From: Klebsormidium nitens | Lineage: Eukaryota; Plantae; Klebsormidiophyceae | Direction of reading: 5' to 3' | Assembly: GCA_000708835.1 (NCBI GenBank) | Contig: DF237073.1 | Span: 86,752-150,751 of the forward strand | Length of the DNA: 64,000 bases | Part shown: one piece after another, positions 33,524 to 36,500 of the stretch | Layout: each line of letters opens with the position of its first letter | Position numbering within the stretch: the first letter of the stretch is position 1 | The notes under the pieces: model-generated | Told to the model about the DNA's origin: nothing | The model's input: only the letters and a program-made list of their open reading frames with translations | Databases searched by the model: none | Translations under genes and position numbers: made by a program

Positions 33524-36500
33524 ATGGCAATGTCAGCGACATGTTCGCTCTTTGATGTCTTCAGGGGGGCTCAATGCTTTCACAATGGGGGCTACTCTCA
33601 GCAGCAATGGCGGCAGAGGAAACCAGAAACTAAGCAGCATTCAATCAGTGCAGGTTTGCAACTCAATGATGTCTCCTCAAGGATAGGGCAGAAAAGATTT
33701 CTAGCAGGAAGTGTTAGCTTGGAGGGTGTGGGAAGGCCAAGATCTGGTCCGCTTCTTCTGAAGAAGGTGAGTGTGACCTGTCTTCAGCACATTCTTGAAA
33801 TTCTACGCCCCTTCCGTTTCTTTAAGAATCAAGGGCATTGTCAAGTGATTGCACAGTCTCAAGTCCGACCAGAGCTGTTGGCAGACCTGCGGTCGCTGGA
33901 GTTATCAATGAATCATCGTAGCCAAACATTTTCTTGATTTTAGTTGCGTGTGGGACACAAGAAACCAGAGAAGACAGGAATAGAATATCCAGCAGGAACA
34001 GGGGTGAAAATAAAATGCTTTGCTCTTTCATTCCATCACCAACTTTCTAGATTTTGGTGCCAGTCCGAGCGGTTGCTTTCCTCCTCATTCGTGCAGCGGT
34101 CAGCAATAGCAGCCAGTGGCCCGGACCAAACCAGCAGCCCCACACAGGTCATCGAACCAGAGCTCACAGTCCCCTCCACTGCGCCTCCCTCAACGCAACC
34201 TGTCCCTCCTGAAAATGGCAGCCCCAACTCCGTCCCTCCAGACAATTTCCCTGCTTGGGCGCGCACCGTCGACGAGTGCGCGGAACACTTCTGTGTTGAC
34301 CTGAAACGTGGCCTGACAACCGGGCAGGTCGAGACGTACCGCTCCGCCTATGGCTGGAATGAGCTTGAGAAAGAGCCAGGAACGCCGTTCTGGCAACTAG
34401 TTGCGGAGCAGTTTGATGACGCACTGGTGAAGATCCTGCTGGGGGCGGCTGGAGTGTCGGGGGCGCTTGCGGTGTGGGACGCTGCTGAGGCGGGGGAGCC
34501 GGTCGGTGCGGAGGACTTTTTGGAGACGTTTGTAATCTTGCTGATCATCGTGTTGAACGCAGTGATCGGGGTGTGGCAGGAGAGCAAGGCAGAGAGCACG
34601 CTTGCGGCACTCAAGGAGATGCAGAGCGAGACAGCTCGGGTCGTGCGAGATGGAAAAGAGGTGAGAGTGACAATCTTGCGCAGGGACTTCTCTTTGCTGA
34701 CAGTGTTTGCTTAGGAGAAATTGCACAGCGACTTGGACTTTTACCCAAGAAGGTCCTTGATAGCCTCTGCGGATCCGTTAATGTTCACTCAAATGGACAA
34801 TCCTCTGGCGAAAGCAGATCAAGGGCAAGCGTGACAGGGAAGGAACCCCGTTATCAACCAGCCGTAGCTCTTCCATATGCTACTGCCCTGTTGTTGACTG
34901 TTCAAGTTCAAAGTTGTGCCACTCCGACAAAAAGGATGTCAGTATCGATCAGAGGGCCTTCTACACAGAATTAGGGCCCTGCATGACCAGAATCCAATAA
35001 CGAAGGTGCGGTTCTGACACCCTGCTTTCAAACACATACAAACGGAATACTCCCTTTTTAGACAATTGCTTCGCCCGTCCTCTGAGACCTCTTCCCGGGG
35101 CCCTGCAGATCCCGGACCTACCGGCGCGCGAGCTCGTCCCAGGGGATCTCGTCGAGCTGCGGGTCGGAGACAAGGCCCCGGCCGACATCCGCTTGGTCGA
35201 GCTGCGCTCCGCCACGCTGCGCGCCCAGCAGTCCAGCCTCACTGGCGAGAGCCAGCCAGTGTCGAAAGACACCCACGTGGTTCCGCAAGAGGATATTGAG
35301 CTTCAAGGAAAGGAGTGCATGGTATTTGCGGGGTCGGGGATCAGTAACGGCACGGCGATTGGGGTGGTGGTCCATACCGGGATGAGGACGGAGATCGGGA
35401 AGATCCAGGCGCAGATCCAGCAGGCCAGCCAGGAGGGGTACGACACGCCGTTGACGAGGTAAGTGAAGGAGAGAACGGGGTCGAAGCGTTTGGAATTTGC
35501 AGGCTAGGGGAGCGCCAAAGACTACTATAGTGTGGGTGTCGTTTTCCGCCTTCGTGAGAATGATTGGAAGGCGGCCATTGTGACCGGAGCCCGAAAAGAT
35601 CTCTTGGCGCGCCTGTAAGGAGTTCTGTACCGCGGGCTCGTCAGAAGATTGCAGAGACGGGGACTTCAAGAGGTGCTTCAAGCTCTTCTTCTTGACGCCA
35701 GTGTCGAGCTTTCCAATCCCAACTTGTTCGTCCTCTGTGTGTGGATGTTCCATCAAGTGTCGCCTTGATGCAGATTCTGACACAATGCCTTCCTCTTTTG
35801 AAGTGCCTTCGCGTGCCAACAAGTCCTACGGACTCCAGTGGTCGAATTCAAAGGCCGTTCTGGACTCAATAGTACGTCCCTAACCATTTACATGCTCGGC
35901 CGCACTCTGGTCTCAGAACGGACGACTTCCGTTTGAAACCTGAACAGCGTCGCACCTCCACACTTCGACTCAACACTTTTCTTTCACTCCCTCCGTAGAA
36001 AGCTGGACGACTTTGCGGACCTGCTCACGAAGGTCGTCGGCGCCGTGTGCGTGCTCGTGTGGGTGATCAACTACAAGTACTTCCTTTCCTTCGACCCCGC
36101 TGCGCCGTTCCCCTCCAACATCCAGTTCGACTTCCAGCAGTGCGCGTACTACTTCAAGGTGGCGGTCGCGCTGGCGGTGGCGGCGATCCCCGAGGGCCTG
36201 CCAGCTGTCATCACCACGTGCCTCGCGCTCGGGACCAAGCGCATGGCGGAGGTGCGGCTTCACTTTGGTGCTACTTCAGAATTGTGCCTACGGTGCTTGG
36301 GATGACGACAAGATCTGAAGAGCAGAGCTGGCAGTGGAGCGCTCGGGTGGTCCCTTGTCCTCCTCGGCGAAGTTGTCCTAGTAACTTTGCATTGTCTTGT
36401 TCATCGTCTTCGTTTCGTGCGAACACGAAATCATATTCAGATCCCCCTTTGACCGTGCTGTCATCCCGCCATGCACCACCAATTGCAGCCAGCCTTTTCG

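Follow-up and report, generated by a model that had tools for sequence, protein, structure and literature searches.

A SERCA/ECA1-type Ca2+ pump of Klebsormidium nitens belongs to a streptophyte clade with long N-terminal extensions and no di-lysine tail: a candidate plastid or other non-ER pump

The 64,000-nucleotide stretch of Klebsormidium nitens DNA analyzed here (contig DF237073.1, positions 86,752 to 150,751 of the forward strand; hereafter the window, in whose coordinates all positions are given) contains a pump gene of 15 coding exons on the + strand, from 33524 to 42912. Judged from its motifs and family matches, the encoded protein is a catalytically complete, two-Ca2+-site SERCA/ECA1-type (P2A-II) Ca2+/Mn2+ pump. 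Phylogenetic comparison shows the gene to be the Klebsormidium orthologue of a conserved streptophyte sub-clade, which we call the long ECAs, whose members differ at both termini from pumps of the endoplasmic reticulum (ER) type. Together, the features of the two ends suggest a previously undescribed Ca/Mn pump of the plastid or of some other non-ER membrane.

The pump gene and its transcripts

When joined computationally, the exons translate exactly into a deposited K. nitens protein of 1181 residues, GAQ82796.1 / A0A1Y1I219 (P0151), which already bears the name Ca2+-transporting ATPase. The joined translation served to test this identity, and homology searches were run exon by exon or with the public protein. 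Transcript evidence came from contigs of four public runs, belonging to four different studies, that were aligned to 32300-38200. The records allow only a guess that these runs are RNA, but because all of the contigs leave out identical GT..AG intervals we take them to represent spliced RNA. The gene is laid out as follows:

33269-33523, + strand: 5' untranslated region (UTR), minimum extent; contig 5' ends at 33269, 33302, 33312 and 33322, continuous to 33764/33766
33524-33766, + strand: coding part of exon 1, residues 1-81 (RNA contigs, translation)
33767-34096, + strand: intron 1, GT..AG, 330 nt (RNA contigs; acceptor AG at 34095-34096)
34097-34246, + strand: first 50 codons of exon 2, residues 82-131, the KKRSAIAAS junction region and then a linker (translation)
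34247-34660, + strand: remainder of exon 2, with FPAW, Cation_ATPase_N and transmembrane segments TM1-TM2 including AEQFDD (Pfam PF00690; residue 4/5 of SERCA1a aligned to residue 134)
35109-35458, 35999-36251, 36656-36994, 37293-37383, 37778-37911 and 38356-38518, + strand: exons 3-8 (match to GAQ82796.1)
39040-39158, 39490-39795, 40169-40282, 40631-40804, 41393-41473, 41922-42215 and 42592-42912, + strand: exons 9-15 (match to GAQ82796.1)
42892-42912, + strand: C-terminal tail KPGSKQ and TGA stop; no KxKxx or KKxx

An initial annotation of the locus, made from the sequence alone, had proposed a SERCA/ECA1-type pump gene, a description with which the multi-exon model, the core motifs and the family models all agree. 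It had also argued that an upstream coding exon was needed, and correctly so: the frame of exon 2 offers no Met ahead of FPAW. The exon that it predicted, beginning MAMSATCS at 33524 and ending at 33766, is indeed transcribed, and contigs of all four runs retain it and splice from the donor at 33766/33767. The acceptor was misplaced. Rather than 34063/34064, the RNA contigs use 34096/34097, 33 nt downstream with the frame kept, so that of the predicted junction 33766/34064 only the donor stands. The junction was reported as 33764 to 34095 in all four runs, and the cut lies two places further right, at 33766 on the donor side and 34097 on the acceptor side. Eleven residues of the earlier model are therefore intronic, which shortens its extension of 142 residues to 131 and its protein of 1192 residues to 1181, and which replaces the cleavage-like string VQRSAIAA by KKRSAIAA. 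A competing GT donor at 33516, raised as a caveat, goes unused, since the contigs of all four runs are unbroken from their 5' ends to 33764/33766. Further junctions are supported by RNA contigs through exon 7. Intron 1 itself is covered only by contigs of low depth (33737-34066 and 33897-34101; depth 4-12, where spliced contigs from those runs reach 86-426), which we read as unspliced precursor.

The start codon, at 33524, is preceded by a stop with no other in-frame ATG in between; its context shows A at -3 and G at +4. The protein has Met residues at positions 1 and 3 and then none until 256, beyond TM1-TM2, and the exon 2 frame read back into intron 1 contains none; a functional pump is therefore impossible without the extension. 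For the same reasons, a shorter isoform begun at a downstream Met or within intron 1 was considered and rejected. Within the transcribed 5' UTR, three upstream ATGs (33388-33463, + strand) form two short upstream open reading frames (uORFs). The one at 33388 comprises two codons, and the one at 33419 comprises 14 codons in the frame of the main reading frame and is closed by a stop, with the ATG at 33449 nested inside it. Translational control of the pump gene by these uORFs could be envisaged.

The predicted protein matches the Pfam families Cation_ATPase_N, E1-E2_ATPase, Cation_ATPase, Hydrolase and Cation_ATPase_C, exons 3-15 (35109-42912, + strand) encoding the A, P and N domains and TM3-TM10. 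With 1043.7 bits, the protein clears the 703.4-bit cut-off of the NCBIfam SERCA-type equivalog TIGR01116 (ATPase-IIA1_Ca), while it stays under the cut-offs of the PMR1-type and PMCA-type models (for the PMCA type, 471 versus 507 bits). Solved SERCA1 chains are matched from residue 134 to the C-terminus at E ~1e-279 (2.5e-279). The motifs TGES (314), PEGL (450), DKTGT (493), TGD (777) and GDGVND (860) fall in invariant columns of a 53-sequence alignment, in which the Ca2+-site residues E451, N927, E930, N955, T958, D959 and E1090 are present and invariant or nearly so. These are the equivalents of SERCA1a E309, N768, E771, N796, T799, D800 and E908. The P2A-II (ECA1-type) branch has been defined by F-x-G-I in the TM7-TM8 loop and by the absence of a Lys before the QF of TM1 (PMC7065118; Palmgren et al. 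2019). By that definition the K. nitens pump is of the P2A-II type, since its TM1 contains AEQFDD and its TM7-TM8 loop FLGI.

A clade of long ECA pumps

The 131 residues that precede FPAW fall into two parts of opposite character. The basic head, residues 1-81, is encoded by the separate first exon, has a net charge of +8 and contains 10 Ser, 9 Gly and 8 Gln with only 4 acidic residues. Residues 82-131, at the start of exon 2, have a net charge of -4 and consist of 24% Pro and 26% Ser plus Thr, forming a linker that ends immediately before FPAW. A Pfam search of the extension matched no family. In an AlphaFold2 model built on the 53-sequence alignment, in which the pump reached a predicted template modeling score (pTM) of 0.75, the predicted local distance difference test (pLDDT) is below 30 in the exon 1 part and below 50 up to residue 124, and residues 1-124 are without secondary structure. 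The extension is thus predicted to be fully disordered.

Long N-termini turned out not to be peculiar to Klebsormidium. A search of a representative protein library with exon 2, which recovered the deposited protein through its cluster, found them in the fern Adiantum (108 residues) and in Closterium (206 residues). In a word search with GAQ82796.1, the best matches were long forms of non-seed streptophytes at 60-64% identity, among them Physcomitrium A0A7I4C0P0, Chara braunii CBR_g8902, Selaginella "ECA 2 isoform X2", Diphasiastrum and Marchantia paleacea, and further long forms came from two Riccia species, Ceratopteris, Adiantum capillus-veneris, Psilotum and several transcript contigs. Before their FPAW-type motif these word-search matches carry 54-162 residues, so that with Closterium the range for the clade is 54-206. 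In a second species, the reading frame of P0164 is closed by a stop ahead of its start codon in transcript contigs from two runs, which shows its 162-residue extension to be real. Outside the clade, the N-terminus is shorter than 40 residues in all of the 104 other matches except Psilotum P0178 (76 residues). That sequence was not taken as support for the long form, as it groups with the canonical clade and is likely an artefact of open-reading-frame calling; the long N-termini of Brassica oleracea P0011 and of P0007, which look like annotation or reading-frame-calling artefacts, were likewise not used. Two members of the long clade are without a long extension, Sphagnum P0214 (993 residues, no extension) and P0184 (25 residues), and both are probably N-terminally truncated models.

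Trees were computed from the pump core alone, with the extension columns taken out. They unite K. nitens and the long forms in one clade, with a Shimodaira-Hasegawa-like approximate likelihood ratio test (SH-aLRT) support of 100 for 53 rows and, in a careful search of 44 rows, an ultrafast bootstrap (UFBoot)/SH-aLRT support of 100/100. Branching within it matches the species tree, from Klebsormidium, Chara, and Closterium with a pair of sequences to bryophytes, lycophytes and ferns. Its sister is the clade of canonical ECA1/2/4-type pumps (support 95/69 for 44 rows; SH-aLRT 99 for 53 rows), which includes a second Chara gene, Spirogloea and the short copies of liverworts, mosses, lycophytes and ferns. 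All of the sampled seed-plant sequences fall in this canonical clade and none in the long one. The initial annotation had described land-plant ECA1-type pumps as having short N-termini, and this holds for the canonical clade and for every sampled seed plant but not for mosses, liverworts, lycophytes and ferns as a whole, which have long-N-terminus orthologues as well. From the topology it follows that the duplication separating the two clades happened no later than the divergence of Klebsormidiophyceae and the other streptophytes. We read the trees as showing an ancient duplication of an ER-type ECA, one copy of which then gained the N-terminal extension.

The clade also differs from its relatives at the other end of the protein. 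None of its 17 members ends in KxKxx or KKxx, versus 95 of the 104 other matches (Fisher p ~1e-14, although the rows are related and the value is therefore not a true probability). The nine exceptions among the 104 are all from Malus or Pyrus and end in RPKTE, while the long clade has a shared tail form of its own, GR-x-(W/F)-F-(T/A)-P. The K. nitens protein lacks a di-lysine motif too, its C-terminus reading KPGSKQ as initially annotated. The chlorophyte outgroups have short N-termini and carry the di-lysine motif; on the latter ground the ER-type state is probably ancestral and that of the long clade derived. At the end of the K. nitens gene, a 55-nt tandem duplication (42854-42965, + strand; two copies with one mismatch, 98% alike) spans the last 18 codons and the stop, with its second copy in the 3' UTR. 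The idea that it had cut off an older di-lysine tail was rejected, as the reading ends in KQ and a stop with one copy or with two.

Across the clade, the extension follows a common layout: a variable head with an uncharged, hydroxylated start, Arg-rich stretches next, and lastly, ahead of (F/Y)PAW, a Pro/acidic linker about 45 residues long. Over the first 20 residues the mean charge is +0.9, with 3.8 Ser plus Thr. Two short motifs are semi-conserved, R-x-S-G-W and [IV][RK]A[VI]KG; the K. nitens protein reads R-S-G-P at the first and SAIAAS at the second. Apart from these, the extensions are conserved mainly in composition and can barely be aligned with that of K. nitens.

Candidate locations of the pump

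How the two altered ends might bear on the location of the pump is a matter for interpretation, and we give the plastid slightly less than an even chance of being the destination to which the N-terminal extension directs it. According to this proposal, the basic, Ser-rich, acid-poor and disordered head would serve as an organelle presequence that is cleaved off, most probably as a transit peptide for the plastid. Cleavage would take place somewhere around the KKRSAIAA region ([IV]-x-A-[VI]-K in the clade) and leave a Pro/acidic tail of about 45-70 residues on the mature pump, which would reside in the inner envelope or in the thylakoids and pump Ca2+ across that membrane at the expense of ATP. 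Mn2+ would probably be moved too, as it is by Arabidopsis ECA1. We count in favor of organelle targeting that the extension was gained relative to a non-organellar paralogue, that the head lies on a first exon of its own, that its composition and disorder fit a presequence, that the extension evolves fast with its general character conserved, and that the ER-retrieval signal was lost alongside. In land plants, mitochondrial presequences are the more positive and plastid ones the richer in Ser and Thr, and the two overlap in algae (PMC12531127). By the land-plant criteria, the composition of the first 20 residues over the clade leans toward the plastid rather than the mitochondrion. Extended to the clade as a whole, the proposal becomes a history that we hold only tentatively and think rather more apt to be wrong than right: an ER pump would have been duplicated in early streptophytes, one copy would have gained a transit peptide and lost the di-lysine motif to become a plastid-membrane P2A Ca2+/Mn2+ ATPase, and this copy would have been kept from Klebsormidium to the ferns and lost in the ancestor of seed plants.

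Several considerations weigh against a plastid pump. The first 50 residues of the K. nitens protein, with 14% Ser plus Thr and a net charge of +2, are only mildly transit-peptide-like, and semi-conserved motifs are unusual in a pure targeting peptide, so that the extension could instead be a regulatory segment. The missing KxKxx may be compatible with residence in the ER, as the ECA1 proteins of Malus and Pyrus are also without it. Animal SERCA resides in the ER with no such motif. In algae, plastid and mitochondrial presequences are inseparable by charge or by Ser/Thr content (PMC12531127). One ECA1-type and one SERCA/ECA3-type gene are listed for K. flaccidum/nitens in a supplementary motif table (PMC7065118), which we used solely for its count of K. 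flaccidum P2A genes; by that count K. nitens may have no canonical ER-type ECA1 copy. If its only ECA1-type gene were plastidial, the ER would therefore rely on SERCA/ECA3-type and P2B pumps. Finally, the papers and supplements that we searched report no plastid location for such a pump. The suggestion of the initial annotation that this is a non-ER, possibly organelle-targeted P2A pump is thus borne out in part: the extension and the missing di-lysine motif are conserved across an orthologous clade, and the disorder and the basic, acid-poor, Ser-rich head agree with it.

The alternative that fares best is a pump of the post-ER endomembranes, which we nevertheless consider unlikely. Freed of its di-lysine motif, the protein would leave the ER for the Golgi, the vacuole, the contractile vacuole or the plasma membrane, and the extension would remain part of it and serve in regulation or sorting, much as P2B ACA pumps carry an autoinhibitory domain at their N-terminus. 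Loss of KxKxx throughout the clade predicts exit from the ER as well as it predicts organelle import, and R-x-S-G-W, [IV][RK]A[VI]KG and the conserved length of the linker hint at a function beyond targeting. There is also a P2A precedent in Arabidopsis ECA3, which acts in the Golgi (PMC8890496). A regulatory domain sits less well with an AlphaFold2 model that gives the extension neither helix nor docking, with the lack of any Pfam domain match, and with conservation that outside the short motifs is mainly one of composition; the N-termini themselves, uncharged and hydroxylated and then Arg-rich, look like presequences.

Targeting by the same head to the inner mitochondrial membrane, either alone or in addition to plastids, strikes us as improbable. 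Some heads are markedly Arg-rich and net positive, with Riccia at +9 over the first 50 residues and Marchantia paleacea at +5 over the first 20, and the failure of charge and Ser/Thr content to separate the two kinds of algal presequence (PMC12531127) leaves room for a mitochondrial signal. Against it, the mean charge over the first 20 residues is just +0.9, with many members at 0 or -1, and the extensions are long (54-206 residues). The clade has been seen only in plastid-bearing streptophytes, but the searches essentially covered only those, so that this carries little weight either way. Equally doubtful is a pump that has stayed in the ER or nuclear envelope through transmembrane or other signals and merely tolerates a fast-evolving, disordered cytosolic tail: the sole ECA1-type gene listed for K. 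flaccidum/nitens (PMC7065118) makes an ER role the simplest assumption, and KxKxx is missing from some canonical ECA1s as well, but Chara, mosses, liverworts, lycophytes and ferns retain a canonical short KxKxx copy beside the long one, which argues for different roles, and a tail without function would hardly have been kept in all of the sampled lineages from Klebsormidium to the ferns.

The chromosomal neighborhood adds little to the favored, plastid reading. Upstream of the pump gene lies a divergent gene for a bacterial-type (organellar) ribosomal protein S10, whose last exon (30363-30629) scores 112.7 bits with the rpsJ_bact model (cut-off 72.75). The initial annotation had described the pair as head-to-head at about 760 bp, in good agreement with the 762 bp that separate the two ATGs. 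The relevant features are:

32643-32762, - strand: exon 1 of the S10 gene, with a 40-residue presequence-like N-terminus starting MASTACAG (transcript contigs 32643-32938)
32939-33268, no strand: interval of about 330 bp that separates the S10 and pump genes at their outermost transcript ends (contig ends 32938 and 33269)

This interval is presumed to be a shared bidirectional promoter. Head-to-head placement with an organellar S10 gene is weak evidence that the two proteins share a location. As a separate observation, the N-termini of S10 (MASTACAG...) and the pump (MAMSATCS...) begin alike. Downstream of S10 exon 1 on the minus strand, probably in the first intron of that gene, 32461-32493 is a perfect three-copy tandem repeat of the 11-nt unit TGTCACACGCT. 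Elsewhere in the analyzed stretch, the G+C fraction falls to 0.00-0.15 in 250-nt windows at about 59100-59700, which most likely reflects a run of N (an assembly gap) and not an AT-rich island.

The exon 2 search also returned P2A relatives that begin with a signal-peptide-like hydrophobic stretch. These are P0093 (the "SERCA" of Symbiodinium sp. CCMP2592, CAE7700124.1), the metagenomic P0089 and P0134, and further P0100, P0109, P0110, P0131, P0138 and P0148, most of the whole set being metagenome fragments. Directly after the hydrophobic start, one group has S-F-V-(x)-A-P-R-R, similar to the "FVAP" motif of dinoflagellate plastid transit peptides, and another group has a conserved L-R-G-G there. 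A cleaved signal peptide is unfit for the topology of an ER-resident SERCA, and these relatives may therefore be SERCA-type pumps of complex plastids, so that such pumps may occur in complex-plastid algae too. In the red alga Cyanidium caldarium, a P2A model (P0053, EP00166_P004696) has about 77 residues before Cation_ATPase_N, possibly as a gene-model artefact.

Implications and comparison with known systems

In the papers that we searched, we found the long clade described nowhere, nor any mention of its extension, of the lack of a di-lysine tail or of the clade's absence from seed plants. Nor did the supplements of a Marchantia plastid proteome preprint, of the targeting-sequence paper (PMC12531127) or of a Physcomitrella N-terminome paper contain Ca2+-ATPase entries. 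A membrane proteome paper on Chara does not distinguish the two ECA paralogues, and a survey from 2012 gives moss and Selaginella ECAs as 1037-1060 residues, from early gene models without the extension (PMC3355532). The 2019 P2A phylogeny is silent on N-termini and targeting (PMC7065118), and in a review from 2021 the P2A pumps are confined to the ER, nuclear envelope and Golgi, with none listed for plastids or mitochondria (PMC8890496).

The uptake, storage and release of Ca2+ and Mn2+ by chloroplasts have so far been only partly explained. If the long ECAs are organellar, they would add an ATP-driven pump to the Ca2+/Mn2+ homeostasis of plastids (or mitochondria) in streptophyte algae, bryophytes, lycophytes and ferns. 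They would also provide a clean case of retargeting after duplication, through gain of a presequence exon and loss of the ER-retrieval motif, and a component that disappeared as seed plants arose and that could be tested in Marchantia and Physcomitrium. Should the plastid reading be true, no earlier P2A pump of the green lineage would have been assigned to plastids, and the clade would represent an ATP-driven transport route hidden from seed-plant models. Even if the clade is not organellar, plant ECAs divide into two sub-clades of ancient streptophyte origin that differ in their sorting signals.

The closest well-known relatives are Arabidopsis ECA1, ECA2 and ECA4 and the other canonical plant P2A-II pumps, which share about 60% identity with the K. 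nitens pump over the whole core, the same Pfam architecture, EQF in TM1, F.GI in the TM7-TM8 loop and both Ca2+ sites intact. They differ from it in having an N-terminus of about 5-25 residues and a C-terminal KxKxx, where the K. nitens pump, in the sister clade, has 131 residues and no KxKxx. Rabbit and human SERCA1a and SERCA2 (e.g., 1iwo and 2dqs) match the full length of the core and start at about residue 130 of the K. nitens protein, but they stand on the other ancient branch of P2A pumps, where TM1 has KQF (PMC7065118). The long ECAs of Chara, Physcomitrium, Selaginella, Riccia and others share with the K. nitens pump the clade, the two-part layout of the extension and the missing di-lysine tail; our literature search found no published localization for any of them. 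For the proposed route to the plastid, there is precedent in the P1B ATPases HMA1, PAA1/HMA6 and PAA2/HMA8, polytopic P-type ATPases that reach the inner envelope or thylakoids by means of a transit peptide (PMC3355532; PMC4613667). These belong to the heavy-metal subfamily, however, and have only the P-type core in common with the pump described here. P2B ACA pumps, for their part, are Ca2+ pumps with a functional N-terminal extension, an autoinhibitory calmodulin-binding domain. Unlike them, the K. nitens pump scores under the PMCA-type and over the SERCA-type cut-off, and its extension has no predicted helix.

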